Positions 1 to 29,014 of a stretch of 64,000 bases of DNA are shown piece after piece. The notes under the pieces were generated by a model, which worked only from the letters and a program-made list of their open reading frames with translations, ran no database searches and had not been told where the DNA came from. The translations under genes and the position numbers were made by a program. Numbering within the stretch: position 1 is the stretch's first letter; every line of letters starts with the position of its first letter. Origin of the DNA: Oopsacas minuta (Eukaryota > Animalia > Porifera); NCBI GenBank assembly GCA_024704765.1, contig JAKMXF010000266.1, forward strand, positions 372,001-436,000. The letters are read 5' to 3'.

Positions 1-3000
1 CTGATCCTACGCAACAACAATCTCTCAGCTTTGGATGGTGTTGAAACTCTAAGACAGCTCTCTGTATTGGATTTAGGCTATAACTGTTTGGATCTGCATA
101 TGATACTCGATCGTCTCGATGCATTGCATTTCCTGCAGAACTTACAATTAATCGGAAACCCTCTATCGTACCATAAGAGACACAGACAACTGACACTATT
201 TAAATTATCTCATGCAATTGATGTGGAAACATTCATCCTTGATGACGTAACTCTGAGTATTTCTGAGACGAAAGAGTTTCTTAGAAACGTTCAATTGAAT
301 GCTAGCTATCATTCCTCCTTGAGTTCGCCATCACATCTCAATTTCTTCAGCTCCAGTTCAAGTCAATCTCATTCTTCAAGCCGAGGACGTAGAATATCTT
401 CTATTCGTACCATAGAGTTAGATGACACTGACTCACAACGGGGATCTGTGATTGAAGATTTCAGACAAATTGAAATCAGAGATAGATTAACAGCGAAAGG
501 TGTACTTCGTACTCAAATGGGACCTGCATGGTTGTCTTCGCAAGAAGAAAGTCCTCAAAGAATTACAAAGCCAGTGCATCGCTCAAAACACAAGCAAACG
601 CATCATACACTCCCTTCACCAACAAAAGCTATTCTCAATGAAGTCACTACTTCGAGCTCAAAACCAAACTCTCCAATAGTTAAAAGTAAACTAAAGGAAG
701 GGAAGGATAATTCTCTTCCAGAATCTCAACAAAGTTACCAGATAGAAGCATTTGTAGATAATTACTCACCAATGCTAGAATACCCTGACCTAGTTACGAA
801 AGAATGCCAGCGAGAAGATGAAACTTCCGCCAGAACTCCTGTTAATGTCGAGGAAGTATCAATACACAATTCTCCACATCTCATAGACGAAGAACAGTAT
901 CTAGTTTACAGTTATGACACAGACGATGAAGAATCTCAGAGAGAGCCATTTTTCATATCATTATCATGCAACAGACTTTATGAACTTAACTACGAAGGGA
1001 AATCTATTCAAGATTACGATATGAATTGTCTTGAGTCAGCCGTTCAATCTGAGAAGAGACCAAATTCTCCTACACAAAATGAAACTAGACAAATTCTTTC
1101 ATTGAAGTTCAATTATCAGAGGAGAGATATGCGGAAGAGAGAATATATATTCGAGAAAGCTCAGAATTTTGAGCTTCTCATCAAGAAATTACAAGATATC
1201 GCGATAGATAATGCAAAGCTAAATCCATTGAAGAGCACATACGAATGCTTAAAATGCAATTCTGTCTATGAGAAGACACAAATGTTGTATTCCTATCCAA
1301 TTAATGAACATTCAAACGATTCTTCACAATCTGTTATAAACTGCCCCCAATGTGGAAGCCAACAACTCACAGATGATTCTAAACTCTCCGTTAAAGATCG
1401 CGAATTGGTTGATTCAGGAACAGCTTTCGTAAGAAAAATGACCCCAGTTGAGATCCGAACATCATATCTAGACAATAGTATAGCAAGTCCAAAGACAAGC
1501 TTGACTAGCAAAGAACTAAACAGAACGAAGCGCGTAGCTATCAGCAAAAAGGAATCTTCTTACTTTTCTGAGAATAAAGTAACTAAATATCGTAAAAAGA
1601 GCATAGATGAAATTCAAGCTCCAGACGATACATTTGAATCCGATTATGAAATGGTTTTACGAAAGAAAGAATCAGCTATAGATGTCCTCTTGACTGACAA
1701 TCAATCTGTATTAGAAAATGCACATAGAAATTTTGAAGCTGACAAATTAATTGACTTTTCTAATGTGAAGTCAAGTGAGAAAGTAGTAGGTAAGGGAAGC
1801 TTCCGTAGGCGAGATAAGCAACCTTACGTTCAACTCTCTGATAGTATGATTGCTAATGATGCAAGAGGACTTACCAAAACTCACATACATACTGATGACA
1901 CTACATCTAATTTTAGAAAGCCTTTTACGAGGCCAAGAGTAAACACATCTCCTTTAGAAGATCTTCAAGAAAACTCGAGCCAAAGTGACAGTGAGAGAAG
2001 GAATTCAGTTTTATCTCACGGTAGTTTCATTTTTCCATCTCGTACCAGTACGGGACCCGAAGGAATAGGACTGCCTTTCTCTTTCCATGATCCATCACAC
2101 ATACGACATGATTTCAAACTATATATCGAGGTTAAACTGTTTGAAAACCATAGTGAGGAATTTTTCTGTCAAATACGGTGTACTGCTGTACAAACTAGAA
2201 TCAGAGAAGAATTTGAATGTCTCCTAATCATATCAACACAAGCTGCATATATTTGCCAGGTAAAAGGATATGAAGAGCAATCACCCTCTGAATGGCTGTC
2301 AAAACTGGCAAGAATTTCCCTGACTAATCTGTTCTTTATTGATATCGGCCTGCATGCTCAAACTATACAGCTTGAATTTAATCGTGTCAAGAATGGATCT
2401 TTTGTTTTCGTTACTAGAGATACCTTACGAACAAAGATATTTGTAGCATCACTATCTGGATACGTTGCGAAGCTAAAAAATGGTAATCTTCAGAGGGTAG
2501 GAAACGACCTTCAAACAATACCAAACTTTAGAGCTAGTATAATTGGCAATGAATCAGGAATTTTCTCAGAAAAATTCGTTCTCGGACTTCGATTCTACGA
2601 AATTATAAGGTACACATCCGATCTCATTAAGACACACAGATTCAACAAACGAACAGTGCATAACACAATTAATGGAGCAAAATTAGTGGACTTTCTTATT
2701 CAGCGTGGAGAAGTCTCCACAATTGAAGAGGCTTGCATTATTCTACAAATTTACATTGACTGTAAGATACTGAATCCTGTTGAGCTATCCTTTGAGCCTT
2801 TTAACCCTGAAAGAAATGTTTATTATAGATTCTTTATTGACGAGCTAGACCCTCAAAGTAGCAGTATTAATCGTAGTGACATACAAATGTTGAATGAAAT
2901 TGAAGAACTCGAAGTATACTGTTTATTGTATCAATTGGAATACAAGCTATCCAATCCCTTACCCGAAAAGAAAACCATTGGCCTCGCAATCACTGAAGAT

Positions 3001-3896: not shown

Positions 3897-6800
3897 ATGG
3901 CAGATCGCCAGCATCCTTATCGCCGCCGTCGGTTTCAATACACCATTGAGATACTGCATGTTCCAGTACTTTACCCTCTAAGAGACCTCGAATATGATAT
4001 AAAGCAGAAATGGGCTAATTGTATTGAAGGGTGTAGGGTGATAGGAAACGATACAGATATGAGAGGTACTTATATCTTCTACATTAACTTCTCCAGTGAG
4101 TATGAAAATGAAGCTAGAAACTGTGCTGAGTTCTTAAAAAATGAGGGATACCTTACTGATGGTATGTATTTGAGAGAAAAAATTCGTGATATGGAACCCA
4201 ATCCAACAGGGAATGAAAGAGAGAGGAGAAGAGGGATGGGAATGGGGAGAGGAAGGGGAAAAGAACAGCGGACTCGTCGTTATGCAGATAGAAGCTTACC
4301 CGATGAGCCAAACCCAAATCCGATAGGACCAAATTATAACTTAGATAGTGCTCATTTCCCAGACACAGACATAGTACCGAATATTGAAATTCCTAAACCA
4401 GGCTACATCATACACGTTAATAATATCCCATCATTCGTAGATGAATATATTCTTGCAGATATGATACTGGATAACGATAAACGCGTAACTAAATTCAAAT
4501 TACGTGATGACTCTTCTAATGCTTCGTTGAAAGAGGCATTGGTCTACGTAGACAATACAGCGGGGATGATGGACCTGATCTCCAAACTAAACCACGTTAA
4601 GGTGGGAGGCAATACATTAGACGCCAAGGAGAAAAGGAAAAGTATCCCTGAACCTAATACTACTAATCTAACTGATTACATGCATCCTGACTTCAATCAA
4701 AGGCCGCGAGCAGGTCCACAATATCCCAGTTCTCATCCTCAACAGAGAGACAATGTTCAACTTACTGAGTCAGGACCAGAGATGTATACGTAAGTATGAT
4801 ATTCAAAAATCCTTTTCATTTTGAAAGTTCGGAAAGAACAAATGTTATAGTTATGCATTTTATAGGCAGAAGACTGTTGAAATGAGCAATCTCCTATACG
4901 ACTTTGTCAAAAGTAAAATGAAGACTCAAATAAATGGCTTTTGTAGAGACCGTGGAGAAATTCATTATGATAATGGTATTCTCCACCTCAAGAGCTATAA
5001 CAAGACTCAACTAGCCACAATATATACCACATTAACCACTGAGGTATTCATTTATTATTTCAGTTTTTTCTCAATTACGTGATGCTTTCTATAGGTGTGT
5101 GAACGAATACAAACATTGGGCCGTGAAGATTTTGAATTCTTAATTCACAATAAGTTTTCAGGCCAGGGTAATATTGTAGAAGAGAAATGCAACGCATATA
5201 AATCTGTTGGACAATTACAGTACTGTCTGAATTCGGTTGAGTTCAGTCTTCACGTATTTGGAATCACAGATTGTGTAAATGTTGTGCTAGACCAGATTGA
5301 AGAGGCTCTCTATTACCAGTTCTATCTGACTAGGTAACGAAATAATAATTTGAATATGCTATGTGTACATTTTTATTGTCTTCTAAGGATCCACTTGACG
5401 AATTTTCATATGGTTATTCTATAAATATATATTGAACTATGCTGCGTTAAAAAATAATCATTGAAGCCTTGATTTTGTGTATGTTTTACATAAATATGTA
5501 GAAACAGAGATTATGAGTTACTCTTATGTAGCCCAATGGATATCTACATATCTGTGTTTCCTGGAGTTATTCAAGAAATCATTGGTACATCTGGCTATCT
5601 AAAAGACACCAGAATTACTATCAAACATAACGTTGAGTTGCTAGTGTGTAAACGTATTCGTGAAGAGATTAGGAGAGTCCAGAATGCGATTATCTGTGAT
5701 CCTTGTAGGAGTTTTCCTTTTGAAATGATTAAAAGTGGGCTGAAATTTTGTAAGAAAAATAATCTTAGAGTTGCAATCATTTACAAAGATTCCAATGGAA
5801 TGTTGTATAAGAGATACCAACAAGACACTGTGGTAAATTTGTGTGGAAATAAAGCTCAAATCTTAGAAGCGAATCAAGCTTTTTCGGCTCCAATTTCTTG
5901 TAAAATTCCAGCGACGAAAAAAGGTTTGGACGTGATCACACAGAGGTGTTCACGGGGCAGTCCGTCTCTTATAAAGAATCTGGAAAATGAACTCACTGTT
6001 TACATTAAATTGCTCCCAAACTCTGTTGATGTAATAGGATTCATCAAGGAGGATATTGACAGCGCTCATGCCCGTATAATTCAAGCTTTTGAAAATGTGG
6101 AACTGTTCATGTCTCATATCATTGAGAAATATCAGGTCATTGTCTACTATAACCTAAAATACTACTTTATGCTTCATGATGGACCTGTTTTTTGTAGATA
6201 GTTTTCTTGCTTGAAGCAACTTCTTTTGATGTTCAATGGACTATGGATATAATAAGTGAGTTTCAGTTAGACTATGAAGTAGAACTTGTGGCGATGAAGT
6301 ATGACTACAAGGTGAAAGGAAGCCAGAAAGCCCTTCAAAAGATTGAAAATGAGCACATACAGATACGCGCTATCTTCAAAGACATAATTCTACACAAGTG
6401 TACTTCCATTCAATTTGATAAAATATCCAGCAATTTCATTACTACTTTGCTGGAGAATTTCTTTCAATACCAATTTCAAAACGAAAATATGTTTATTTCT
6501 TATAATTGGGAAATTCAACCCAAACCTAATAACCTAGATGTGTATATGGAGATTATTGGTAGAAGTTCTGACGTAAATATATTGTCTTCCAAGATCAAAG
6601 TTTGTTAATTACACTCTTAATAATGTTGGTAATTCTTGTATGTAATATAATTTTCCTTTTCAGAGTATAAAGCCTTCATCAGGGAAATTGAGAGAGAAAT
6701 TCGGACCAAGGGAGTTACAGCAATTGGAAGTACTAGGATCAATCTTTCTTAAGATTACATCGAGTGAATTTGTTTGTTTTAAACCATTTTTGAACCAAAT

Positions 6801-9800
6801 AGAGTATCATTCACTTGGTATTAGTACCAAGAAGCCATGGAATATCTTCGATTCAATAATGTCTGACCAGGAGGTAATACGTACAATGCCAATTTCGCCA
6901 TCAACTTTGTATTTTTTGCGTTCCAAAAAGCTCTTAAAAGAATGTGAAAGTATGTGTCATTGTACGATAGTTGAAGAGCCTAAAGAACGAAGTCCAAATG
7001 ATAGGACTAGAAGACAACAATTCCAAGGCGAGAGGAATAATCTCACAGTGATAGGCAAGCATGCTGATGTTAAAGCGGCCACGGATAAATTGAAGAATTG
7101 GAATGAGAAGTTTATCACCAAATCTGTTTCAAAAAGTATCCGTGTTAAACTGAAATATTTCTTCTCTACGGAGTTGGAAAGTTTTAAGAAAGATATTGAA
7201 AATGACCAGATGATAATTATTGATATTCGTGATGCAAAAAAGAAATTACTAGCCAAGTCTAATGAGAATGAAGATGAAATAGAGTTTTCCATTCGAATAG
7301 AGACATTGGATAAACCCTTATGTGAACAATATACTGATATGGTAGAAGAACAACTTAAATTTGTGAGGTCGGATGAATTTCCTCTGTCAGATCGTCAGTT
7401 AACGTTGTTATTGACTGCTTGTAAAGATCAAGTTATCCCAAAGAATAAACATTTTTATGTGGAAATTGAGCATAAGCAGCGAAGGACAGGATCTGCTAGG
7501 ATAATAGCAATCCAGCATTTTAGAGACGCGCTTACGAAAGGCATTGAAGCAACGTCACCATACATACAGATTCAAGATAAATTGTACTCGCCACCAGTTT
7601 TCCTTCAAGAACTACTCTTCAACTACAGAAAGTACACAGAAGCGATGAATATTAACGCCAATACTTTAGGAGTTGAGTGTTCAAGACCTCAATCTTATAA
7701 GGGCAGGTACAAGCTTTCAGGTAACCCTGAAGCTATACAGAAAATGATATTTAACTTGAAAAACTTTGAGTCTAGTTTTGTTAGCCAATGTGACCAAACT
7801 GAGTTTGAAATCAATCTTCCACTCAAAGAGTTGAAACACGATGCGAGTTTTACAAATCTCGAGCGTGATATGGCGAAGAATTGTAACGTTAAGATATTCA
7901 TGTGTGGAGATCTACCATACGATCTAGAAAGTGAGATAAAATTCGATTTGGATGGAATATCCTCTAACTGGGATACGCCAAGTTCAGCCAATCGGAAGCT
8001 TTGTACTTATTTCTACTCCAATATTACAATTGAAGTGATGAAAGGTGACATAACAACACTTGAGGTATCTTGTATTGTAAATGCAGCTAATGAGAGGTTA
8101 GAACATGATGGTGGCGTTGCAAAGGCCATAAGCAATGCGGGTGGACCAACTATCCAGAAGGGATGTACTAGATATATTCTGGAAAAGGGAAATCTTAGTG
8201 TAGGAGGCGGTGTACTACAAGGACCAGGAAATCTCTTATGTAATAAAGTAATACATATTTCTTCTGCATTATGGGACCCAATGAATCGGCAAAGATGTAT
8301 AAATGATTTGAAAAGTTGCATTGAGACTGTCTTCAAGCTTTGTGAGACCCATAAGCTTCCTTCTATTGCATTTCCTGGTATATCAACTGGAAATTATGGG
8401 TTTCCTGCTGCTGTAAGTACAAAAGCAGTTATACAAGAGTGTAAAGATTATATCGATAATCATACCGAAACTCAAATACAACGGTTGATATTTATAGATA
8501 TAAGTGACAATATTGCTAAGAGTTATAATACAGACTGTCAGCGATTATTCCGTGAAGTTACTACGATTAATCCCTTTGAAGATAAACTAGCTAGTTCCTT
8601 TTACCCGAGGTTTTCTCGTTTAGGCCAAGCAACTCCAACTGATCGAACACTGTCACAAACAGGAAACTCAAATATTAGCTCAGGGAGTAATCAATACGAA
8701 TTTTTTTGGAAAGAAAATGACAATAAATTCTATCTTTACGATTCAAAATATCAGGAAATACTCAATACAGCATACAAATTGAACCCGTTGGGTAATGTGA
8801 CTTTCACAAGAGGAAGCTATAAATACACTGTAGACTTCTCCACCTTACAACAGACGAATCTTTCCACCAATATAAACCGAACCATTCAAATTAAATCAAT
8901 AGTCGACCCAGATAGTACTCCTTTACCTAAACCACCTCCTGCATCAATTCAAAGTGATGAGTCCGAACTACATTGTTATTGGTACTTTTTCAGCGATCTT
9001 AATCAATGGAAATCATATTCCCACGACATAACCAGGAAACTCTCCGATGCTTACTTAAACAACCAGAAGGGGAGTGTTGTAATCTCACAAGGTGCTTCTA
9101 ATTATGAAATAGATTTCACTACCATGACACAGACTAATCAAGAGACCGGCACTGTTCGTAAGATTAAAGTAGATAAGGATAAGCTTGAAACTGCCATGGG
9201 GAAGCTAGCGATTACTTCTGGTGAGAATGTTGTACTATTCGGTATTCGAGAAAATATCGTTTTGGCTAAAAACAAATTGTCTCATTTTATCAGAACTAAA
9301 TCAAAATCAAAACAGCTTGATATCCATGGTATACCTAAGACTGTAATGATTTCCACTATAATTAAACTGAAGCAAGGCTATCCTCATGTCAAAGTCGAGG
9401 TTAAAGATAAAGGAGAAGATTACGTCATTAAGTTAAATGGGTTTGCTGAGCATGTTAACATTGTGGATACCACATTGAGAGATGTGTACATTAAATGTTT
9501 GGAAGATATCACAAGGCAAGATCGTGCTTCTCAAGTTACCATTCCAACACATTGGAAGGCCCATGCACAAAATGAAATGAGCATTATAGTTCCACTAGCT
9601 AACGGTTGTGCTGAATGGATTGAAGTAGCTGCCAAGTTTAATGCAACTTCGAGGTGCATTATTAAAACTATTGACCGTATACAGAATAAGTGGTTATGGA
9701 GGAAATATCAACAAACAAGAGATGGTTTCAAAGCTATTGAACAAAATGAAAACGAATTAACTGTTTTCCATGGCACAAGTGCAACAGATCCCGAATTAAT

Positions 9801-10146
9801 CTATAAAGGCGCTGAAGGTTTTGATTTCAGACATTCTAATATAGGTATGTGGGGTAAAGCGAATTACTTTGCTGTGAATGCCAGTTTTTGTGAATCCTAT
9901 CAATACACTGACCCAACCACGAACTCAAAAATGATATTACAAGTGAAGTTGTTAGCTGGCAATGTAGCACATTTACCATCAAAAAGTTCACTTACGATGC
10001 CACCCCCACTTCCCAACTTTATGAAGCAACAATTTGTTGGTCAGAGATACGATACTGTATCTGGAGATCACACAGCAGGCTCAAAGGTATACATGGTGTA
10101 CACGAATGAGAGGGCCTATCCTGAATATCTCATTACTTACTCTTAG
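3897..10146 (+). CDS. PARP14: PARP14/PARP9-family macro-PARP, about 1942 aa: RRM-like and KH-like N-terminus, one macrodomain, two WWE domains, ART catalytic domain
   Basis: Exons 3897-4789, 4866-5043, 5095-5333, 5502-6135, 6198-6599, 6664-10146. All introns are GT-AG and phase-compatible; total 5829 nt. Macro motifs KGDIT, NAANERLEHDGGVAKAI, AFPGISTGNYGFP. WWE motifs FFWKEND...YTVDFSTLQQTN and WYFFSD...YEIDFTTMTQTN. ART motifs VFHGTS, GKANYFA, AYPEYLITY. The symbol denotes the family, not proven orthology. Confidence 0.85.
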
Positions 10147-14145: not shown

Positions 14146-17100
14146 ATGACAGATTTTCCTGTTGGGACTTTAGTATGGGTGGAAGTTGGTGAAGGTTATC
14201 TCTTACCTGGCAAAGTTAAGGCTAAAGGAAAAAATAATAACAGCATCATAGAAGCGAATGGGAAGGAACATTGCATTGCATTTGCACAACTATTGCAAGG
14301 TGTCAAAAAGCGCGATGCTATTCCAGAGAAGGGCATGGAAGATATGATAAAGCTTTCTCAATTGCATGAAGGATCAATGCTATATAATTTAAATCTACGC
14401 TACAAACACGATTTAATCTACACCTATACTGGTAGCATCCTTATTGCCATTAATCCTTATCACTTATTTGATATTTATAATGTTGAGACTGCTCGAGCTT
14501 ATGAAGGTCAGTTATTGGGAGCTTTGCCTCCACACATATTCGCTATAGCAAATTCAGCTTACATGCATATGAATGCAAACAGACAGAATCAATGTGTGGT
14601 TGTAAGTGGGGAGAGTGGAGCAGGTAAAACAGAATCTACGAAATTAATTCTACAATATTTAGCTATTATTAATAAATCCACACATAATTTGATCACTGAA
14701 AAGATATTAGAAGCAACCCCAATTCTTGAATCATTTGGAAATGCTAAAACTATTCGGAATGATAATTCGAGTAGATTCGGGAAATACACTGAAGTATTTT
14801 TCGATAAACAAGGATGTATTGAAGGAGCAAAAATTTCTGATTATCTTCTTGAGAAATCTAGAATTGTGTTTCACGCGGATGAAGAGAGAAACTACCATGT
14901 ATTCTATGAAATGATTTCTGGTCTCTCTCAAGAGCATTTAGATAAACTAGGACTTTCGGCTGCGGATAAATATTTTTATTTGAACCAAGGTAGGGGTATA
15001 AGTTTTGAAAGTAAGAATGATAGTCAGGATTTCCAAAGATTAAATGAAGCAATTGATTTCTTAGGGATACAAGACACTGAAAAAGATGGAGTATTCCATC
15101 TGCTAGCTAGCATTTTACATTTAGGCAATGTTTGTTTTCGTGCGAAAAGCAAAGAGGATCAATTTGCTAGTTTCAAAAATACAGAAGCCTTAGATGTTTG
15201 CTGCAATCAGCTGCAAATTACCAAAGAAAGACTTCGGGTTGCGCTTACTCATAAACGCACTGTAACTCGTGGAGAAGAATTCCACACTCCCTTACTAGTA
15301 GAGCAAGCATTAGATGCTAGAGATGCTCTAGCCAAGGCATTATACTCCCATCTATTCAATTGGCTTGTCATGAAGATAAATAGTATTGTGTATGCAAATT
15401 TACCAAAGTATTCAGTTTCTATCGCGGTTCTAGATATATTCGGTTTTGAAATGTTTCAGGTTAACAGTCTCGAACAGTTGTGTATTAATTACGCCAATGA
15501 ACAACTACAATATTATTTCAATGAATACATTTTCCATCTTGAACAACAGGAGTATATGAAAGAGAAAATTGACTGGAAAACAATCGAAGTTCGCGATAAT
15601 CAACCTTGCATAGATCTCATTTCAAAATTTCCAATTGGTTTATTACATATTCTAGATGATGAGAGTCATTTCCCGAAAAGTACCGATGAATCTTTTCTCG
15701 ACAAATGTCACCATGAACACAGTCAAAATCCCAACTACATTCATCCCAAACAAAAAGTGTTAGTTTTCGGTATTCGACACTACGCTGGCAATGTTTGGTA
15801 CAATGTTGAGTATTTTCTGGACAAAAACAGGGATGTTTTCAGGAACGATTTTGTGAACATCCTACAAGATTCAAAATTACAGTTTATATCTACCATCTTC
15901 AACCAAACACTCACAAATCAACCCAACCAAACTCTAGCTGGTACTGCTACAAGAAAACGAATGCCAACAGTAGCTGCTAAATTCACGCAATCTCTCAACT
16001 CACTGATTGATACAATGAAAAAATGCCATCCATTTTTCGTACGCTGCATAAAACCTAATGAGGATAAATCATCATTAAATTTCATTGAGAAATTAGTGTT
16101 AGAGCAATTGAGATACTCAGGTATGCTGGAAACGATAAGAATTCGTAAATCAGGTTACCCTATTCGCTTAGACTTTGATTCATTCCTCTCGCGCTTCCAT
16201 TTCCTAGCAAGAAACAAGGAAAAACTTAGGGAAATGTCGCCGAAAGTAGGCATAAGTCATATCCTCAAATCCGTGAATGCTACTGGATTCCAAATAGGTC
16301 AAAGTAAAGTATTTCTTCGAGAAACAACTGAGTTAATTTTAGAGAAAACTAAATCAATAGAAATACAAGCAAAATGTGTTATTATACAGAAGGTTGTTCG
16401 TGGTTATTTGACTCGTATGGCTTTCATTCGTGTAAAAGCTTCAGTTCGTATTTTACAGTCAGCTGTAAGATGTTTCCTTGAAAGAAGGCGATTTTTGAAA
16501 TTCAGAAAATACGTGATTTATGTTCAGGCGACTATTCGGATGTTACGAGTCCGTAGACGTTATTTCATACTACTTGACGCGAAGAGACGATCTGACAGGG
16601 ATAAAATACAGAAGCAAGCCTTAATTAGAGCTGAGCAAGTTGCACTACAACTCAGCAAAAGACGGATACAACAACAAAAAGATAAACAAATCATCTTACA
16701 ACAACAACACCAAGATGATGCGACACATTTTAAATTTCCGCCTCCACCACCTGCTCTATCTACTGACCTATCTGAATGTGGAATTGATATCAACGCTATG
16801 CTTAGCGCTATCAACAAGGTTTGGACACACCCACATATACAAAAAGATCTTAAACGGATAGAACAGGATCAAGTGAATCAAATTCTGGAAGTGCCCTCAA
16901 ATATTCGAGACCTCCCAAAGGCCATCAACAATTGTCCGTTTTCTAAATACGCGAGAGCTTTTTTCCAAGAAGATAGGGAGTGGGTTATGGTGAAAAACAG
17001 AGTACCTATCTCATTCCTAAAGTTAAGTCCCTCTGTAGATAAAGAAGCTAAAATATTATTCATGTTAGTTCAAGAGTTCTTAACAAACAATTCATTTTCC

Positions 17101-20100
17101 CTTCAGGATGAGATAACTTTTGGAAATTACATCATCCACAAGGCGCTAACATCTCCTCAGTTACAAGAAGAGTTAATTGCTCAGCTCTGTAATCAGACAC
17201 GTTGTAATTACAGTGATGATCAATTGAGTAAGGCTTGGGTATTAATTGCCTTATGCATGTGTTCCTTCCCACTCCCAAAAGAAATTCATCCATTCATGTT
17301 GAACTATGTCTCTCATTACGCTTATGACGGCTATAAAGCATACTGCCAATACAAACTACTACGAACTACTGAATTACAAATTCAACGCTCTTATCCACCA
17401 TGTTTGTTAGAATGGAGATCTGCGAAGGAATTTAATACTATCACACTCAATATTGAATATGCTGATATAATACGTTCTGGGAAATCGAAGCTGATAAGTA
17501 TTGACTCGTGGAGTAAAGGCCAAGAAGTTGGCGCTGCTTTAATACAATCTCGCATATCATCAAAACTAGCCACAACGAAAGGCTGGAGTGTCCAATTACA
17601 AGATGACTTACAGCAAATAGAAATACCAACCTACGCATACATTCTTGATCCAATCTCCCTGATAGAATTACCACCTTACTTTTCAAAACAAAATAATTCA
17701 ACATATCTCTTCTCATGGAAAGGAGTTAAGCCAAGGAATTTCCCATCTAATATTGACGGACAATCTACACCAACTAGGTTACTCCCTGACAGACTATCCA
17801 GTTATTTAGATAATATATTTGATCCAATATTCACTGATCCTGATAACAGAAGTATTAATCAATCTATTTCAAGTGATGACCTTAAACAATTGGCGAATCC
17901 TCTTGTTATAACTGCAGAGTTGGAAGCAAATCTCCCTCCTAAGTCTTCAACACAAATATTCAGATACCCCAAGATAGAGACATCACCAGCAACATACACT
18001 AATCCTGATTGGCATTTTATGTTAAGAAAAGAGTATTTCACTCCTGGAGAAGATATAGAGAATCCAATCATATTAGATTTAGTATTCTTCCAGATTCTCC
18101 AGGATGTATATTCATCATTTTGTCTTAGGATATCACCACAAGAGCGTCAAAACATGTTAGAAATGTTCAGTGAATACAATATTACCTTATTCAATGCAGA
18201 ATGCAGTATAGCAGTTAAGAAATCTATTATTACAGCAGCTCGCTCTTGGCAGTGCTATTTCTCAGCAATTTCTCCAGTCTCTGGTGTAGGCAGTGCTGCT
18301 AGGTTCACTCATATCGGCGTTGGACACGCCAACATTATGATGATAAAGCAGCCAACTGAAGGAGACTATCTACAAGTAATAGACACATACGAGTTCAATA
18401 GCATACACGAGTGCATTAGTCTAAACCCTAAATTAATGAAATTATCTATTGGCAATTCACGTGATCTGGAATTTGTGTCTGAGTATGCGTTGCTGATAGT
18501 TGATCTAATCAGTGATCAGATTTCAATGTTGGAAGATGACTATCGCTTTGTTCTAGCCACAAGAGATTATCTAACTGAAGAGAAGAGCTTGCTTTCATTC
18601 ACGAAAGGTTCCATAATTAAGTTGCTGGCAAGACGTGATTTGGATAAGGGCTGGTTATACGGTGAAACTGCTGGTCAGATGGGGGTGTTCCCTGAGGATC
18701 TCGTCGTCCCTATTCTCGGTGAAGAACCCACGCGAGTTGCTGTAGAACGTGCAGAGTACCAGAACAATAAACGAATGAGTCTCCTCCCTGCTATCAATGA
18801 AGAAGAGGATAGAACCAAATCCGTCATTGATTTAATGCTGAATCAAATGCCTCAAGAAACTGAAAGTATTGAAGGATTGCGTAGACCCCCACTAATTACA
18901 AGACGCTCCTCCAAACTAATGTCACGTAGTGGTAGTATCACATTCAGATGGGCTATGACTGAATTCGCTATTAAACATTTCCGTTTCGGAAAAGAACGAG
19001 TTGATTATGAAAAGAAATTCGCGTCATCTATTCGCATAAAAAAGCTAACAATTACTGGTTCAATTCGAGAGAAGTTTGGTAGTCGTATTAAACCATCAGT
19101 TGACCATTTCAGTATAACGAGATTGTTCACTTACACTAAAACTCCTTTAGAATCAAGTTTACTACGTTTAGATGCGAATGACATTAATATTAACAAACTA
19201 GCGGTCGAAGGCTTCCTCAATATAATGATATTCATGGGAGATTATATGAGTAAAGGGAAAAGAGATTTTGAGATTGTTAATTTCCTCCTGAAAAACGGTT
19301 TGGAGTATGATGAATTGCGTGATGAGATATTTTGTCAGCTCGTTAAACAGACAACCAATAATAGTAGCCATAAATCTGATAGCTGTGGACGAGGTTGGTG
19401 CCTCATGTACATTTGTACTTCATTCTTCCCGTGCTCTACAACACTACAATCTTATCTTTTGCAACATTTCCAAGTACTTTCGGATGATACGCAGAGTATT
19501 TATCATGGAATCGCGACGAATTGTCTCGTTGCAATAAGGAAAGTATGTAGATTTGGTCCAAGACAGAATTTACCAAGTGATAACGAAATTAACGCACTTT
19601 TAGCTAACAAATACTCAAAGCATATTTGCATTCATCTCCCAGGCATTCTTACTAGAGTAGTTAAGATTTACAGTCACACAACAGTACATGATGTTAAACT
19701 GAGCATTTGTGAAGAAATGGATATTGTGAGTCCTAAACTTGTAGAAGAGTTTTTATTATTCATTGATTTTGGAGAAAAAACACAAATTTTGCCGTTAGAA
19801 GCGAATGAGTATATTTTCGATGTAATGAGCATGATTGAAAAAGAGTTTTTAGATTATAAAATATTTTTCAAACGAGCTATTTGGTTCCATCAAATCAAAT
19901 TAAAGAATCCTTTATTAATAGAGATTGCTTACCATCAGGTTCTTAGGAATTATTTGAAAGGTAACATTATTGTTATGGATGAAGAGAGTGACATAATTCC
20001 AACCTTTAGAGATAAAGTATTGTTGTTAGCAGCGCTACAACATAGAGCTCTTGCTAATCCCAAACCTCCAGAACGACAGGAAATGGTGAAAATTATTCCT

Positions 20101-20562
20101 AAGTGTATTTGGCGATCAATGACACCTCATCAATGGATTCTAGCTGTAAATGAAAAATTCCAAGATATTTTCGATTTAACGGACAGTCAAGCTAAATTTG
20201 ATTTTGTATTTCAAGCAGCTAGCCTGCCACACGCCGGCTCAGCTTTCTTCAGAATATTCCATGTATCCGATCGCAGGATTCCTGGAGAATGTATTCTAGC
20301 AATTAATAAATTCGGAGTCCACTTCCTAGACACGACAACACACCGTTCAATATTCTCATACGCACTACAGGATGTAGTATCTACACGGAAAATACGTTCT
20401 CATGATGGTAGACAATTTCTTGACATCAAATTTGGTAATTTGATGGTTCAACGTATTATTCGTTGTGAAACACCACAAAACCATGAAATCGGGCCAATAG
20501 TACGACAGTATGTGAATTTCCATATGGAATTAGCTCTTGTTAATACTACAGACAAAATTTGA
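14146..20562 (+). CDS. MYO15: Unconventional myosin XV (motor, IQ repeats, MyTH4-FERM, SH3, MyTH4-FERM), single coding exon
   Basis: P-loop GESGAGKT, NDNSSRFGK, LDIFGFE, FVRCIKPN, IQxxxRG repeats, two MyTH4 regions, SH3 (KGWLYGETAGQMGVFP), and the class XV-typical DLVFFQILQDVY...RISPQER. First ATG is at 14146; the ORF-track start at 14059 is TTG. Confidence 0.9.
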   Translation: MTDFPVGTLVWVEVGEGYLLPGKVKAKGKNNNSIIEANGKEHCIAFAQLLQGVKKRDAIPEKGMEDMIKLSQLHEGSMLYNLNLRYKHDLIYTYTGSILIAINPYHLFDIYNVETARAYEGQLLGALPPHIFAIANSAYMHMNANRQNQCVVVSGESGAGKTESTKLILQYLAIINKSTHNLITEKILEATPILESFGNAKTIRNDNSSRFGKYTEVFFDKQGCIEGAKISDYLLEKSRIVFHADEERNYHVFYEMISGLSQEHLDKLGLSAADKYFYLNQGRGISFESKNDSQDFQRLNEAIDFLGIQDTEKDGVFHLLASILHLGNVCFRAKSKEDQFASFKNTEALDVCCNQLQITKERLRVALTHKRTVTRGEEFHTPLLVEQALDARDALAKALYSHLFNWLVMKINSIVYANLPKYSVSIAVLDIFGFEMFQVNSLEQLCINYANEQLQYYFNEYIFHLEQQEYMKEKIDWKTIEVRDNQPCIDLISKFPIGLLHILDDESHFPKSTDESFLDKCHHEHSQNPNYIHPKQKVLVFGIRHYAGNVWYNVEYFLDKNRDVFRNDFVNILQDSKLQFISTIFNQTLTNQPNQTLAGTATRKRMPTVAAKFTQSLNSLIDTMKKCHPFFVRCIKPNEDKSSLNFIEKLVLEQLRYSGMLETIRIRKSGYPIRLDFDSFLSRFHFLARNKEKLREMSPKVGISHILKSVNATGFQIGQSKVFLRETTELILEKTKSIEIQAKCVIIQKVVRGYLTRMAFIRVKASVRILQSAVRCFLERRRFLKFRKYVIYVQATIRMLRVRRRYFILLDAKRRSDRDKIQKQALIRAEQVALQLSKRRIQQQKDKQIILQQQHQDDATHFKFPPPPPALSTDLSECGIDINAMLSAINKVWTHPHIQKDLKRIEQDQVNQILEVPSNIRDLPKAINNCPFSKYARAFFQEDREWVMVKNRVPISFLKLSPSVDKEAKILFMLVQEFLTNNSFSLQDEITFGNYIIHKALTSPQLQEELIAQLCNQTRCNYSDDQLSKAWVLIALCMCSFPLPKEIHPFMLNYVSHYAYDGYKAYCQYKLLRTTELQIQRSYPPCLLEWRSAKEFNTITLNIEYADIIRSGKSKLISIDSWSKGQEVGAALIQSRISSKLATTKGWSVQLQDDLQQIEIPTYAYILDPISLIELPPYFSKQNNSTYLFSWKGVKPRNFPSNIDGQSTPTRLLPDRLSSYLDNIFDPIFTDPDNRSINQSISSDDLKQLANPLVITAELEANLPPKSSTQIFRYPKIETSPATYTNPDWHFMLRKEYFTPGEDIENPIILDLVFFQILQDVYSSFCLRISPQERQNMLEMFSEYNITLFNAECSIAVKKSIITAARSWQCYFSAISPVSGVGSAARFTHIGVGHANIMMIKQPTEGDYLQVIDTYEFNSIHECISLNPKLMKLSIGNSRDLEFVSEYALLIVDLISDQISMLEDDYRFVLATRDYLTEEKSLLSFTKGSIIKLLARRDLDKGWLYGETAGQMGVFPEDLVVPILGEEPTRVAVERAEYQNNKRMSLLPAINEEEDRTKSVIDLMLNQMPQETESIEGLRRPPLITRRSSKLMSRSGSITFRWAMTEFAIKHFRFGKERVDYEKKFASSIRIKKLTITGSIREKFGSRIKPSVDHFSITRLFTYTKTPLESSLLRLDANDININKLAVEGFLNIMIFMGDYMSKGKRDFEIVNFLLKNGLEYDELRDEIFCQLVKQTTNNSSHKSDSCGRGWCLMYICTSFFPCSTTLQSYLLQHFQVLSDDTQSIYHGIATNCLVAIRKVCRFGPRQNLPSDNEINALLANKYSKHICIHLPGILTRVVKIYSHTTVHDVKLSICEEMDIVSPKLVEEFLLFIDFGEKTQILPLEANEYIFDVMSMIEKEFLDYKIFFKRAIWFHQIKLKNPLLIEIAYHQVLRNYLKGNIIVMDEESDIIPTFRDKVLLLAALQHRALANPKPPERQEMVKIIPKCIWRSMTPHQWILAVNEKFQDIFDLTDSQAKFDFVFQAASLPHAGSAFFRIFHVSDRRIPGECILAINKFGVHFLDTTTHRSIFSYALQDVVSTRKIRSHDGRQFLDIKFGNLMVQRIIRCETPQNHEIGPIVRQYVNFHMELALVNTTDKI

Positions 20563-20752
20563 CTTTTCTTATTGTTTCAGATTATTTTAGTATATTTTAA
20601 TAATTATGCTTATTGGTTGATAATTTAAATTTGTTAGAATAAAACTCAATTTTCCAGACTGAGATAAAATATGGGACAAGCAGGGATGAGAAACAAGTAA
20701 TGCTTTATAAGACAACGTATACGTATTCCTCTGTATTTTGATTAGCTCTTTA

Positions 20753-22228
20753 ATGGCCAATTCAAAGGAATACTTCAATAAACAACCGACTCAAAGCGGA
20801 ATAAAAGACTTAATTGAAAAGAAACTTATCCAGGTAGATCTGGACGAAATATACACACCACCAGTCGTCAGACCTATCGTATTTACTGAGAATTACGTTT
20901 CTAATAAACCCAAAGAGTTTATGCAACTTGGTAGTATAGTACAATCCAATTTACCAAATGAATTGATTGACCAGTCATCTTTAATTACAAATGAATCATG
21001 GCAAAAAGATAACAAATCATTAGATTTTGAAATGAAGATAAACAAACTAAAGTTAGAAAAGACCAAAAACGTTGAAACGAAAAATGTATTTTTGAATATC
21101 AATGACCCGTGGTGTATGATAGCAGTTGGTATACAAGGTGCAGGGAAATCACATACATTAATGAAATTAGTAGAAAGCTGCAGTATTCAGTTACCTGATA
21201 ATAAACTTCAATTTCCCATGACGTCACTTATTTGCCATTATGATCCTGATCTCAGTAATTATTGCGAAGCTGCAACTTTAGCATTATACCCATCAGCTGA
21301 TGTACACGTAATTGTCCCGCCTGATATGTATAATGAGCGGAAAAAATTTTACTCGTCTCTTCCTATGGTGAAAATACACCCTCTACTTTTTCAGTTTAAA
21401 AAGCTATCTATTGACCATATAAGGAAATTAATGACTGTAGATGCAGGCGAGAATATATTGTATATGCAAATACTGACAAATATACTCCGTAAATATCAGA
21501 AAAATGGGGAAAAATTGACCAGCATTAATCAGCTTTGGTATGAACTCAATGGTAAAAATAGTGTAGATAATCTACAGAAGCAACAACTGGTACCTCTCAA
21601 ACAGAGGATAGCTCTACTCCAGTCTTTTTTAGCTGGAGAGGCAGAAAATAATCCTATACAACTGTCCTCAAAAGCATCTGGGAATTGTATAGAGGATATC
21701 AGCGAATTATTTGAGTTGAAAGGAGCTATCCTTATCTTAGATTTATCCAATCCGCTAATGGATCAGAGTGAAGTATGTAGTGTTTCTAACATATTTGTTG
21801 ATATGTTCGTACATCATAAGGTTGATCATGGTAAACTGCTATGTTTTGATGAAGCACACAAGTTTCTAAGCAAATATAATGAATTAGCAAATACTATCGT
21901 TATTTCTGCTAGAGAATTGAGGCATCATGGACTACGTTTACTTGTTTCAACTCAAAACCCAGACATATTACCTGACGAATTAATAGAACTTTCAAGCCTA
22001 GCTGTTCTCCACCAAATCTTCTCCCCCAGATGGATTAAATTCCTTCAAGCGAGATATCCATTGAGTAATGAAATTGTAAAATCATTGGAGGGATTGTCTG
22101 TCGGACAGGCCATCATATACTCGCCCCGAGCGGCCATAAACTCACCTATTATCGGATCAGAAATTGCACACATTCAAGTATCAGGTCGCCAATATAGCTC
22201 ATCTGGTAGTAAGCTTAATAGTAGCTAA
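20753..22228 (+). CDS. HerA/FtsK/VirB4-superfamily P-loop ATPase of the type seen in fungi, protists and bacteria
   Basis: Walker A GIQGAGKSHT, Walker B LLCFDEAHKF, arginine-finger-like RELRHHG, sensor STQNP, and ILDLSNP. Intronless. Confidence 0.8.
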   Translation: MANSKEYFNKQPTQSGIKDLIEKKLIQVDLDEIYTPPVVRPIVFTENYVSNKPKEFMQLGSIVQSNLPNELIDQSSLITNESWQKDNKSLDFEMKINKLKLEKTKNVETKNVFLNINDPWCMIAVGIQGAGKSHTLMKLVESCSIQLPDNKLQFPMTSLICHYDPDLSNYCEAATLALYPSADVHVIVPPDMYNERKKFYSSLPMVKIHPLLFQFKKLSIDHIRKLMTVDAGENILYMQILTNILRKYQKNGEKLTSINQLWYELNGKNSVDNLQKQQLVPLKQRIALLQSFLAGEAENNPIQLSSKASGNCIEDISELFELKGAILILDLSNPLMDQSEVCSVSNIFVDMFVHHKVDHGKLLCFDEAHKFLSKYNELANTIVISARELRHHGLRLLVSTQNPDILPDELIELSSLAVLHQIFSPRWIKFLQARYPLSNEIVKSLEGLSVGQAIIYSPRAAINSPIIGSEIAHIQVSGRQYSSSGSKLNSS

Positions 22229-22464
22229 TCATTTGGATATTTTTAGACTTTTAATTGCAACTAATTGTTGAATTCTATTATCTTATAGATTTTGTTTACT
22301 TTGTGATTTGTTGTATTTGATTGCCTTATCAAAGCTTAAAACGTATATTCTAATGAATTCTAAATTCAGTAAAATACTCGCATTATCCAACAATCATTTC
22401 CTTAAGCATTTTTAGAATTAACACATTTGAGTGGATTGGATAACAAATTTTGCTTTGTATCAAA

Positions 22465-23097
22465 ATGGAATTGCTTTCATCATTTTTTAAAGAAAGTAAC
22501 CCTAACAAAATGTTTGAAGATTTCATATTTGCTCATACACAGACGACCAAAATGGGTGAAGAAATGATTTCAAAGCTCCGACATCAAGTTTTATTATTTG
22601 AGAAACCTGCATCAGAGAAGGTTAAGAAATGTAAAAAGCCTAAGAACATTGTTGGCCGTCAAAAAATAATGAAAAGTATCGGAGATATTCCGAATGAATC
22701 TATCAAATATTATTTATTTATTCCTATGTATAAGCTATGGCAACAATATGCAGCTGAAGTATTAGGCAAAGTCATTAGCAACCCAACGAAAGGCCAAATA
22801 ATGTCGAACTGCCAAAAACTAGTTAGACTTGACTACCACGGCTGTTTGATAACTGTGCTCGATTCGAAATGCAATTCATACATAGGACACACTGGTATTG
22901 TGATAAAGGAGTCGCAAAATACATTCACTATTGTAACTTTGAAAGATGAACGGAAAACTATCCCCAAACGTAACACTGTATTCGCGTTTAATTATGGAAA
23001 TGTAATGTTCAAATTGTTTGGAAATAATTTCAGAGTACGACCTAGCTTGCGTTGTTCAAAGCGTTTCAAAGATAAACCAACAACAGAATATTTATGA
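22465..23097 (+). CDS. POP4: Ribonuclease P/MRP protein subunit p29 (POP4/Rpp29)
   Basis: DYHGCLITVLDSKCNSYIGHTGIVIKESQNTF...IPKRNTVF...LFGNNFRVRPSLRCSKRFK. Confidence 0.92.
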   Translation: MELLSSFFKESNPNKMFEDFIFAHTQTTKMGEEMISKLRHQVLLFEKPASEKVKKCKKPKNIVGRQKIMKSIGDIPNESIKYYLFIPMYKLWQQYAAEVLGKVISNPTKGQIMSNCQKLVRLDYHGCLITVLDSKCNSYIGHTGIVIKESQNTFTIVTLKDERKTIPKRNTVFAFNYGNVMFKLFGNNFRVRPSLRCSKRFKDKPTTEYL

Positions 23098-23165
23098 ATC
23101 TTATCAAACCTTATATTTTCTAAATAAAATTATGCCTCAAACAATGAGATTTCATTTGTTTCGTA

Positions 23166-23233
23166 GCAGCGATGATGTTGGTGCGATGGGCGGACTGAAT
23201 TACATGTTGTTTCCAGCGCCTCTACTGAGCTGT
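23166..23233 (+). ncRNA. SNORD43: Box C/D snoRNA, SNORD43 (U43)/snR70 homologue; predicted guide for 2'-O-methylation of the C in 18S ACCGCmCCGUCG
   Basis: Terminal stem GCAGC/GCTGT. C box ATGATGT 23172-78, D' CTGA 23195-98, C'-like ATGTTGT 23204-10, D CTGA 23225-28. Guide GCGATGGGCGG (23183-93) pairs over 11 nt (one G-U) with the universal SSU rRNA CCGCCCGUCGC. The +5 rule points to the position known as human Cm1703 / yeast Cm1639. Confidence 0.8.
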
Positions 23234-23509
23234 AAGCATAGCTTACCTACGTGAATGCGTGATACATTTATTACAGGGTATACAATGCGGTAGTAAATAT
23301 GGCTGCTCATATATTATATCAGTTATATATTAAAAATTTGAATGTCAGCATACTAAATTCTCACTATTCAATTGTATGTATATTATTAATTGAGCCTCTA
23401 TAGCCACAATACACCATGCAATGCATTGGATTGTTGTATAAATATAGGTGATTATACAACTTAGTCAATTCTGAATTTCTCTACAGTTATACTACTAGTG
23501 TATTTTATT

Positions 23510-27562: not shown

Positions 27563-27595
27563 ATTATTTGATTAACTCTTTGATGGTTAGTGATT

Positions 27596-29014
27596 ATGTC
27601 ATCTTCCTGTATCATCCTATTCTTCCTTCTGCTAACAATAATTTCAGTTCAAACTGCGATAGTTAAAACACAAGAAAATACTTGGAAAACCAAATATTTC
27701 GAGCAAAGAGTAGATCATAATGACTACAGAGTGAATAGTTTGGGATCTTTTAAGCAACGCTATTTGATAAATGGTAACTCGTATAAAGGCGGAAATTTTC
27801 CAATCTTTTTTTACACCGGAAATGAAGGAGATATAACTCTATTCGCAAAAAACACTGGTTTAATATGGGAATTCGCGGCCCATTTCAATGCACTAATAAT
27901 ATTCGCAGAACATCGTTACTATGGAGAATCACTCCCATTCGGTTCTCATTCATTCGCTAACAACTCAATGCTAGCATTCTTCACTGCAGAGCAAGCTTTA
28001 CAGGATTACGTCACATTAATTGAATACCTTAAAGCGACTGTAGCCAGTACTAATTCCCCTGTAGTTGCATTCGGTGGTTCTTATGGCGGTATGTTGTCTG
28101 CTTGGCTTCGTATGAAGTACCCAGGTACAGTTGTAGGTGCTTATGCCGCATCAGCTCCCATATGGCAGTTCACCAGTTTGACACCTTGTGAGACGTTCAA
28201 TTCTATTGTCACACGAACATATCGTGGGACTAATTCAAACTGTCCATTAAATATTCGAAATTCATGGAAAGCCATAAGAGGAATATTCGAGAGAGGTCAA
28301 CCCGCGAAATTGAAATCCTTATTTCATCTGTGTGACGATATAAAGGACAAAGATGAATTGAATGCGTTAATAGCCGCAATTAATAATGTATGGGTGAGTA
28401 TGGCAATGGCAGACTACCCGTATCCAGCCAATTTCCTAGGAAACCTTCCTGCATGGCCTGTGAACTACACTTGCAATATATTAAGCAAGAGCCCAGCTAA
28501 TGAAGATGCTTTGTTAATGTTAATCTCAGAAGCTGTACAAGTGTTCACTAACTATTCAAAAGATGTAAAATGCTTCAATATAGCGAACGGAGGAGATCCA
28601 CCCGCTCTATCTACAAATGGTTGGGATTATCAATCCTGTACTCAAATGGTAATGCCAATGTGTAGTGATGGTAAAAATGATATGTTTGAAGTACAAAATT
28701 GGGATTTTGACGCTATGACTCAGTATTGTATAAAGGAATTTCGAGCTGTGCCGCGAGAATTTTGGGCTGTCCAGACTTTTGGTGGTAAAGAAGCTGTCGC
28801 GAAAGCTGCAAGTAATATTTATTTTACAAACGGACATCTTGATCCATGGTCTGGTGGCGGTGTTCTAACTCAACTTTCCCCTTCGTTACATGCTTTCGTT
28901 ATCTCTGATGGAGCTCATCATGTAGATCTACGTGCTAGTAATCCTCATGACACTACCGCGATTAAACAAGCTAGAAGTATAGCAAAATCTCTAATCACCA
29001 AATGGGTGAGTTAA
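27596..29014 (+). CDS. PRCP: Lysosomal Pro-X carboxypeptidase (peptidase S28)
   Basis: Signal peptide, YFEQRVDH, FYTGNEGDI, AEHRYYGES, nucleophile GGSYGG, NGHLDPWS, GAHHVDLR. Confidence 0.95.
   Translation: MSSSCIILFFLLLTIISVQTAIVKTQENTWKTKYFEQRVDHNDYRVNSLGSFKQRYLINGNSYKGGNFPIFFYTGNEGDITLFAKNTGLIWEFAAHFNALIIFAEHRYYGESLPFGSHSFANNSMLAFFTAEQALQDYVTLIEYLKATVASTNSPVVAFGGSYGGMLSAWLRMKYPGTVVGAYAASAPIWQFTSLTPCETFNSIVTRTYRGTNSNCPLNIRNSWKAIRGIFERGQPAKLKSLFHLCDDIKDKDELNALIAAINNVWVSMAMADYPYPANFLGNLPAWPVNYTCNILSKSPANEDALLMLISEAVQVFTNYSKDVKCFNIANGGDPPALSTNGWDYQSCTQMVMPMCSDGKNDMFEVQNWDFDAMTQYCIKEFRAVPREFWAVQTFGGKEAVAKAASNIYFTNGHLDPWSGGGVLTQLSPSLHAFVISDGAHHVDLRASNPHDTTAIKQARSIAKSLITKWVS

Follow-up and report, generated by a model that had tools for sequence, protein, structure and literature searches.

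The glass sponge Oopsacas minuta carries an intact, single-exon gene for a predicted HerA/FtsK-superfamily P-loop ATPase of 491 amino acids (aa) in a 64,000-nucleotide stretch of its genome (the window; contig JAKMXF010000266.1 of assembly GCA_024704765.1, positions 372,001 to 436,000 of the forward strand), where it stands between the genes for myosin-XV (MYO15) and the RNase P/MRP subunit p29 (POP4). Pumping ATPases of the HerA/FtsK type are generally seen as belonging to prokaryotes and viruses. The sponge gene is the first animal member found of an already described eukaryotic HerA-like family, and the whole is best explained, with good probability, as a resident, single-copy, single-exon glass-sponge gene of that family that is constrained, ancestral and lost twice or more. 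An initial annotation of this DNA, made from the letters and their open reading frames (ORFs), had proposed a candidate horizontally acquired HerA/FtsK-type ATPase with an unknown role; the superfamily assignment is upheld by the analyses below, and the eukaryotic branch concerned, clade 6, had already been described in 2024 (PMC10853773).

The open frame spans positions 20738–22228 of the window on the plus strand, and its first ATG, at 20753, yields 491 aa and a stop codon. The ORF listing and a motif script agree with the initial annotation on an intact, intronless frame containing GIQGAGKS, FDEAH, RELRHHG and STQNP, and no intron needs to be invoked because all four orthologues found in sponges are single open frames beginning with ATG. 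In the family alignment (120 relatives), the Walker A motif, the Walker B motif and the Arg/Gln block show no or almost no variation, as do R387, R390, H391, R395, S399, Q401 and P403, all of which are present in the sponge protein. The block running from RELRHHG to STQNP is a candidate source of arginine-finger and sensor residues, with putative roles for the single residues.

The AlphaFold2 (AF2) single-chain model, built with the 120 relatives in the alignment, reaches a pLDDT of 88 and a pTM of 0.87. Its best 50 Foldseek matches in the PDB are all HerA or the HerA-like TdpA (4d2i, E 3.6e-14), and VIA-align gives Z scores of 27.6 and 27.4 for HerA chains, 26.0 for VirB4, 24.7 for the C-terminal domain of DndH (7es4), 20.7 for TrwB and 17.9 for FtsK. 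The structural alignment with HerA starts near model residue 45 and runs onto residues 111–474 of Sulfolobus HerA, i.e. past the barrel; the N-terminus of the model consists of just two short helices and a hairpin, leaving the HAS barrel without a counterpart. The insert helices (220–226, 236–250, 258–266, 276–290 and 297–308) lie between strands 206–210 and 325–330 with pLDDT above 83, and the C-terminus forms a short extension. Among sequence profiles, NCBIfam returns partial matches to CedD (5.7e-12) and to HerA models, all far under the family cut-offs (17–25 bits for the HerA models against cut-offs of 800–970), and in PADLOC the MADS-system model mad8 scores best (1e-13, spanning the whole core), with HerA matched as well. 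A sequence search of the PDB finds HerA 4d2i (2e-4), in an alignment that covers Walker B and the Arg block after it. Foldseek, VIA-align, NCBIfam and PDB sequence matches thus all bear out the HerA/FtsK label, and the protein is, as judged from sequence and model, a HerA/FtsK-superfamily P-loop ATPase with a complete set of predicted catalytic residues.

Residence, retention and loss at the MYO15–POP4 slot

The ATPase gene is a real, intact, resident gene of the host chromosome, neither contaminant nor chimera. A single 12.5-kb contig assembled from sequencing run X3 alone spans positions 19800–23400 with zero differences, a 3.2-kb contig of run X2 bridges both junctions of the gene, and contigs of run X1 are interrupted only at a short dispersed repeat near 20666–20699. 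This check of the junctions covered 3.6 kb; runs X1–X3 may be the window's own source, and the stronger, independent support is the occupied slot in other assemblies. In run X5, which belongs to another study and organism, pieces of the ATPase gene are 87–97% identical, and the sole length change in the frame is an in-frame deletion of 9 nucleotides. The gene has a G+C content of 0.354 and a third-codon-position G+C (GC3) of 0.307, beside 0.309–0.331 for the GC3 of its neighbours, and its codon usage is ordinary. No terminal repeats or target duplications were found flanking it. Coordinates and Pfam domains also agree with the spacing first reported, with 190 bp separating the gene from MYO15 upstream and 236 bp from POP4 downstream.

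Eight related genomes were examined, the window's included; the other seven are assemblies ERZ25766962, ERZ25072740, ERZ20067936, ERZ25072730, ERZ25071281, ERZ23487945 and ERZ25069837. An intact orthologue of 502–507 aa lies between MYO15 and POP4 in three of them (L001, L002 and L003), on contigs of 0.65–1.5 Mb, and is followed by the same downstream gene set, namely cytochrome b561, an S28 peptidase and, where the locus extends so far (L001 and L003), a BEACH protein. The synteny comparison that the initial annotation had proposed therefore finds the slot intact in three assemblies, empty in three others (L011–L013) and occupied by a pseudogene in one (L014, which is ERZ25072730); the recurrence of the gene order, with the single-run contigs across the junctions, confirms its placement of the gene in animal DNA and rules out an assembly chimera. 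The window ATPase shares 68% aa identity with L001, 66% with L003 and 60% with L002 (L001 and L003 share 85%), and this ranking of the assemblies is the same for the neighbour genes, indicating vertical inheritance of the ATPase within this sponge group. Each genome has one copy, among the matches listed. POP4 adjoins the slot in all related assemblies, with the ATPase present or not; because the whole block is syntenic and POP4 stays where the ATPase is lost, the adjacency of the two carries no weight of its own. Conserved blocks are visible in the N-terminal extension among the four sponge orthologues. Their upstream spacers give no meaningful alignment, and a count of the palindrome TGACGTCA is uninformative at such short stretch lengths.

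The ATPase is under purifying selection where it is retained. The only pair with unsaturated synonymous sites is L001–L003, and on that pair the ratio of nonsynonymous to synonymous divergence (dN/dS) is 0.09 by NG86 and 0.12 by YN00 for the ATPase, beside 0.07 for MYO15, 0.10 for POP4, 0.13 for the S28 peptidase and 0.21 for an unassigned gene.

In L011, L012 and L013, POP4 follows MYO15 after 562, 536 and 2313 bp, respectively (L011 12397–12958; L012 12424–12959; L013 10439–12751), and neither protein nor DNA comparison detects an ATPase remnant in these spacers; the three assemblies form a single clade that MYO15 places as sister to the window, with 80% nucleotide identity. The 1.5-kb spacer of L014 (contig ctg83183_317x_l, 10436–11938) is an ATPase pseudogene in the same slot, with pieces matching aa 27–96, 61–248 and 384–503 in differing frames, stop codons, and an internal deletion of ~420 nucleotides that removes the Walker B region. 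By MYO15, L014 is related to L001 and L003 (nucleotide identity 88.5% and 85.5%). The gene is intact in the same slot in L002, the most distant assembly; the common ancestor of these eight related assemblies therefore already carried the ATPase between MYO15 and POP4, and at least two losses followed. Short ORFs encoding repeated 'WTIREP'-type peptides occur on both strands of the 2.3-kb L013 spacer, which may contain a small repeat element that inserted there.

The pseudogene in L014 and the absence from L011–L013, together with the lack of transcript support (the runs holding the stretch are not on record as RNA), could be read as signs of a decaying or functionless relic that is still open by chance in this genome. 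Such a relic is improbable, given that full-length frames with every catalytic residue persist in four lineages whose synonymous divergence is saturated, that dN/dS is as low as that of POP4, and that the deletion in run X5 leaves the frame intact. The gene is thus better described as constrained where kept and dispensable elsewhere: its loss in related sponges implies dispensability, as would be expected of an accessory gene more than of a core or housekeeping one. The pseudogene and clean-deletion relatives constitute natural knock-outs for comparing function.

Family membership and origin

A 2024 paper on Dnd systems in Nucleic Acids Research described eukaryotic 'clade-6' HerA/FtsK domains in 'novel genomic elements' (PMC10853773). 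The taxa that it lists are fungi, stramenopiles, haptophytes, metamonads, some plants and Capsaspora, with no animals, and the hallmarks of the clade are a 4-helical insert, a C-terminal hxhxxRxRhsxDsGx[ST] motif, a winged-helix-derived N-terminal extension and no linkage to nucleases (PMC10853773). The same version was captured by bacterial DndH, and its tail has been proposed to dock a cellular partner (PMC10853773). On sequence grounds, the sponge ATPase is assigned to this eukaryotic clade-6 HerA-like family.

A word-based protein search returned 232 relatives, the best 120 of which were listed. Among these, identity falls to 33–37% past the three orthologues; the family as a whole matches over aa 105–485 at 33–42% identity (E ~1e-60). 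Named relatives, from this list and from cluster look-ups, include the diatoms Thalassiosira, Skeletonema, Cyclotella and Leptocylindrus, as well as Dictyocha, the chytrid Geranomyces, the sanchytrid Amoeboradix and many Ascomycota and Basidiomycota, plus a Tara metatranscript. An exhaustive HMMER search of 1.84 billion representatives gave 1536 relatives at E<=1e-3, 910 at E<=1e-10 and 256 at E<=1e-30, with a step in score from 608 bits for the sponge gene's own cluster to 232 bits for the next; outside that cluster, the matched stretch begins at about aa 100–110 in most relatives and before aa 60 in none. An ESM Atlas search agrees with this picture. No animal occurs among the named members found, which are a minority of the family, and the named relatives and the published survey (PMC10853773) are in line with the early expectation of stand-alone kin in fungi and protists, outside the standard animal gene set. 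A common database label on these relatives is 'Zona occludens toxin N-terminal domain-containing'. The Zot family (PF05707), a frequent label of fungal members, does not match the sponge protein, and 10 of 73 relatives match it weakly (best 4e-4); the name is an annotation habit and reflects no toxin relationship.

The closest sequences in bacteria are domains of giant proteins. A tblastn search against plasmids gave six matches covering the ATPase core (aa 105–464) at 23–28% identity, with E down to 7e-31, and at five plasmid loci (L004–L008) the match is the C-terminal part (last ~450 aa) of a protein of 1728–1858 aa. A large protein kinase accompanies it in the operon at two of the five loci, a PP2C phosphatase at two and a helicase at one. 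These loci come from Hymenobacter, Piscinibacter, Bacteroides finegoldii, Chondrinema and Bacillus thuringiensis; the module consists of a ~520-aa protein and then a ~1800-aa protein ending in the clade-6 ATPase, all annotated 'hypothetical', and its neighbours include Fic, HipA or Tn7-like genes, an arrangement resembling a defence island.

In a tree rooted on the five bacterial DndH-like tails, the eukaryotic family forms one clade (100/100) with the sponge clade inside it, so direct transfer from bacteria is not supported; the rooted trees place the origin of the sponge ATPase inside the eukaryotic family. ATPases of HerA type occur mainly in prokaryotes, and glass sponges house dense archaeal and bacterial symbionts (PMC10280926), both of which could favour a recent transfer from a bacterium or archaeal symbiont, or microbial DNA misjoined to sponge DNA by the assembler. 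This alternative is very improbable, considering the low identity and giant-protein context of the bacterial matches, the position of the sponge genes in the rooted trees, the single-run contigs across the junctions, the occupied slot in other assemblies and a GC3 like that of the neighbours. In addition, a scan of 185,579 prokaryotic genomes with the pattern QG[AS]GKSHT[LVS] found no relative, although such a scan has little bearing on distant kin, and phage records contain no match to the ATPase. Horizontal acquisition, as first proposed, is thus a candidate explanation and no more, and an origin directly from bacteria conflicts with both the rooted trees and the host-like composition.

For a gene that came from within the eukaryotic family, one history, with about an even chance of being right, is an ancient transfer from a protist or zoosporic fungus, maybe via a virus or mobile element, into the glass-sponge stem, followed by fixation. 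No named animal appears among the listed relatives or in the published survey, the gap from 608 to 232 bits stands in a search of 1.8 billion representatives, and a single gain is more parsimonious than at least six losses across animals. The family tree is not species-congruent: a careful tree restricted to named sequences makes zoosporic fungi plus ochrophytes the sister group of the sponge clade (98/95) and sets Dikarya apart, and an approximately unbiased (AU) test rejects sponges and all fungi as one clade (p 2e-5). As read from these sequences, the whole tree fits movement between eukaryotes or old paralogy, and it identifies no donor for the sponge gene. Eukaryotic members are moreover regarded as parts of 'genomic elements' (PMC10853773), and a eukaryote-type member stands beside a Pox_A22/Ydc2-type resolvase on an IMG/VR contig. 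However, the sponge clade is nested in no sampled donor group; it sits on a long, deep branch whose stem measures ~2 changes per site and whose placement the 75-row tree does not fix. The composition of the gene is fully host-like with no element structure left, Capsaspora, a close relative of animals, is listed as a holder of the family (PMC10853773), and losses are demonstrably frequent, with at least two among the eight related genomes.

Several of these points suit vertical descent from an early opisthokont or earlier eukaryote, with the gene kept in glass sponges and lost in other animal lineages, a history that we consider plausible and put somewhat short of an even chance. The family is found in fungi and, per PMC10853773, in Capsaspora, the sponge clade is deep and not nested within a donor, recent losses are repeated inside glass sponges, and the slot is old and stable with saturated synonymous divergence. 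Such descent requires independent losses in demosponges, calcareous and homoscleromorph sponges, ctenophores, placozoans, cnidarians, bilaterians and probably choanoflagellates. The grouping of sponges with all fungi is rejected, that of sponges with zoosporic fungi is disfavoured (AU test, p 0.0125, for a group chosen after viewing the tree), and no Capsaspora sequence is among the best 120 of the 232 matches to the sponge protein. We lean slightly towards transfer from another eukaryote over vertical retention with many losses.

The IMG/VR contig mentioned above (L009; IMGVR_UViG_3300035703_002455, 47.7 kb) carries the eukaryote-type family member at 45–938, at 34% identity and cut by the contig end. 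Its neighbours encode the Ydc2/Pox_A22-type resolvase, a Clp protease, a BspA-type leucine-rich-repeat protein and a CRAL-TRIO protein. The contig is filed as viral and would then be a fragment of a giant virus, unless it is protist DNA filed wrongly; should it be viral, it could represent a vehicle between eukaryotes.

A number of observations weigh against the overall account of a resident, constrained and ancestral gene of this family. Pfam at E 0.01 assigns no family to the ATPase protein, DUF87/HerA models included. Two conserved positions of the C-terminal family motif are replaced, as all four sponge orthologues have Ser for D483 and Ser (Leu in the protein P0004) for the canonical R477; R479 and G485 are kept, and the last position is Lys. 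The sponge protein lacks the RNA- or DNA-binding modules present in relatives. In addition, no run holding the stretch is recorded as RNA, and loose ends with Nextera adaptor look like those of DNA libraries. Finally, names were obtainable for a minority of family members only, so that animal members may exist elsewhere.

Neighbouring genes and other features of the window

The features of the ATPase gene and its flanks are collected in Table 1.

Table 1. Coordinates of the ATPase gene, its motifs and extensions, and its flanking features in the window.
Feature	Position in window (nt)	Residues (aa)	Strand	Basis or remark
Predicted HerA/FtsK-superfamily P-loop ATPase gene, single exon, 491 aa	20753–22228, stop codon included		+	Intact ORF, model, fold match, orthologues
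Walker A/P-loop, GIQGAGKS	21128–21151	126–133	+	K132 and S133 invariant in family
Walker B, FDEAH	21845–21859	365–369	+	D366, E367 and H369 invariant; aligned to Walker B of Sulfolobus HerA 4d2i
RELRHHG	21911–21931	387–393	+	Script
STQNP	21947–21961	399–403	+	Script
RELRHHG...STQNP block, after Walker B strand	21911–21961		+	Aligned to matching HerA block, 4d2i
N-terminal extension, in sponge orthologues only, in place of HerA HAS barrel	20753–21067	1–105	+	Profile search, structure alignment
Helical insert within P-loop domain	21410–21676	~220–308	+	AF2 secondary structure; fits published '4-helical insert'
C-terminal extension with modified hxhxxRxRhsxDsGx[ST] motif	22163–22225		+	Alignment, family conservation, PMC10853773
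MYO15 (myosin-XV), single exon, 2138 aa, upstream neighbour	14146–20562		+	Pfam Myosin_head, two MyTH4, SH3, FERM; best named matches, tree
POP4/RNase P-MRP subunit p29, 210 aa, downstream neighbour	22465–23097		+	Pfam RNase_P-MRP_p29, 1.6e-27
MYO15–ATPase spacer, 190 bp	20563–20752		.	Contains short dispersed repeat at ~20666–20699

The motor of MYO15 is 52–57% identical to animal myosin-XV; its best named match is from the sponge Oscarella pearsei, with Sycon and a choanoflagellate at 54%. In a quick tree with a choanoflagellate root, a long branch outside Bilateria unites the window with its relatives, and the tree does not settle where this branch stands relative to other sponges. Further neighbours are an unassigned 397-aa gene, cytochrome b561, the S28 peptidase and the BEACH protein (3313 aa). 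No nuclease partner (NurA, Sir2 or DUF4297) is encoded by the neighbour genes in the window, as the initial annotation had stated. The G+C content of the window is 30–39%, and the majority of its genes are single long ORFs, traits that agree with published glass-sponge (Hexactinellida) genomes. The published genome of Oopsacas minuta measures 61 Mb in 365 scaffolds (N50 0.67 Mb) with 36% G+C and 1.59 introns per gene (PMC10280926), and that of Aphrocallistes vastus has dense genes, many of them single-exon, with extensive microsynteny among glass sponges (PMC10282587).

The ~33-nucleotide element at 20666–20699 has 2–5 times the local read depth in the three runs X1–X3, and single-run contigs break there; copies with 3–5 mismatches occur on several other contigs, and one copy lies within the window. 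It looks like a dispersed short repeat. Farther upstream, positions 6688–10146 encode a single-exon 1152-aa protein with a Macro domain, two WWE domains and a PARP catalytic domain, a make-up like that of PARP14, and a PARP14-like gene likewise lies upstream of MYO15 in L011–L013. The S28 serine carboxypeptidase ORF at 27590–29014 was called from a GTG, which is the start used in the analysis; its orthologues begin with ATG, and the true start in the window is probably an ATG further in.

Proposed function and comparison with known systems

Accessory domains in relatives offer clues to the substrate of the family. Among 73 non-Dikarya members, OST-HTH/LOTUS occurs in 7, zf-met in 10, the double-stranded RNA (dsRNA)-binding JAZ finger in 4, LYAR in 1 and SAP in 1–2; the carriers of OST-HTH/LOTUS, at the N-terminus, or of zf-met/JAZ fingers are protist members. 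For this region, PMC10853773 mentions just the winged-helix-derived extension. Residues 1–105 of the sponge ATPase match no Pfam family, and OST-HTH and zinc fingers are absent there. By analogy with these relatives, the modules point to nucleic acid, RNA in particular, as the probable substrate, and the LOTUS/OST-HTH and dsRNA-finger fusions provide a testable lead to an RNA or ribonucleoprotein substrate in a family without experimental data.

As predicted from the family fold, the ATPase would assemble into a ring, as HerA-type ATPases do, and the ring would use ATP to move along or remodel nucleic acid, while the conserved C-terminal tail probably docks a partner protein. The ATPase would then act as an accessory factor, with conflict with viruses or mobile elements as its most likely function. 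These steps differ in probability. It is quite probable that the protein is an active nucleoside triphosphatase, and slightly more likely than not that it is a nucleic-acid motor. A role in defence against viruses or mobile elements, suggested by context, is doubtful though conceivable. More speculative still is the scenario that glass sponges domesticated a conflict or mobile-element ATPase after an ancient protist- or fungus-like transfer, using it as a stand-alone ring motor against viruses or transposons; if true, the DndH/HerA 'clade-6' motor would thereby gain its first instance in animals.

The finding extends the eukaryotic HerA/FtsK branch, surveyed in 2024 in fungi and protists, to an animal lineage, in which the gene behaves as an ordinary chromosomal one with a fixed slot, purifying selection and host-like composition. 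What is new here is that related sponges have lost the gene from this slot or keep it as a pseudogene; overall, the result is an incremental extension rather than a new kind of system.

Compared with known systems, the sponge ATPase shares its fold and helical bundle with HerA proper, represented by archaeal HerA-NurA and the bacterial anti-phage systems HerA-Sir2 and HerA-DUF4297. However, it has no HAS barrel and no NurA, Sir2 or nuclease partner gene, its identity to HerA proper is 13–19%, and it does not reach the curated models of PF01935 type. The VirB4/TrwB/FtsK branch gives comparable structural scores, but the sponge ATPase lacks a membrane or secretion-system context, and sequence profiles favour HerA, CedD and mad8. 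Its closest prokaryotic sequence relatives are the DndH-like giant proteins (DndFGH-type; mad8), whose bacterial tails share the C-terminal R-x-R...G-G motif; unlike these, the 491-aa sponge protein stands alone amid unrelated host genes and is not a giant-protein domain in an operon. The nearest counterpart is the eukaryotic clade-6 family, with which it shares the helical insert in the P-loop domain, a C-terminal extension with an R...G core, and the absence of a fused or adjacent nuclease. It differs from other clade-6 members in its clade-specific N-terminal 105 aa and in the replacement of R477 and D483 of the C-terminal motif and, free of any mobile-element sign, it occupies a fixed syntenic slot as a single-copy gene of an animal host.

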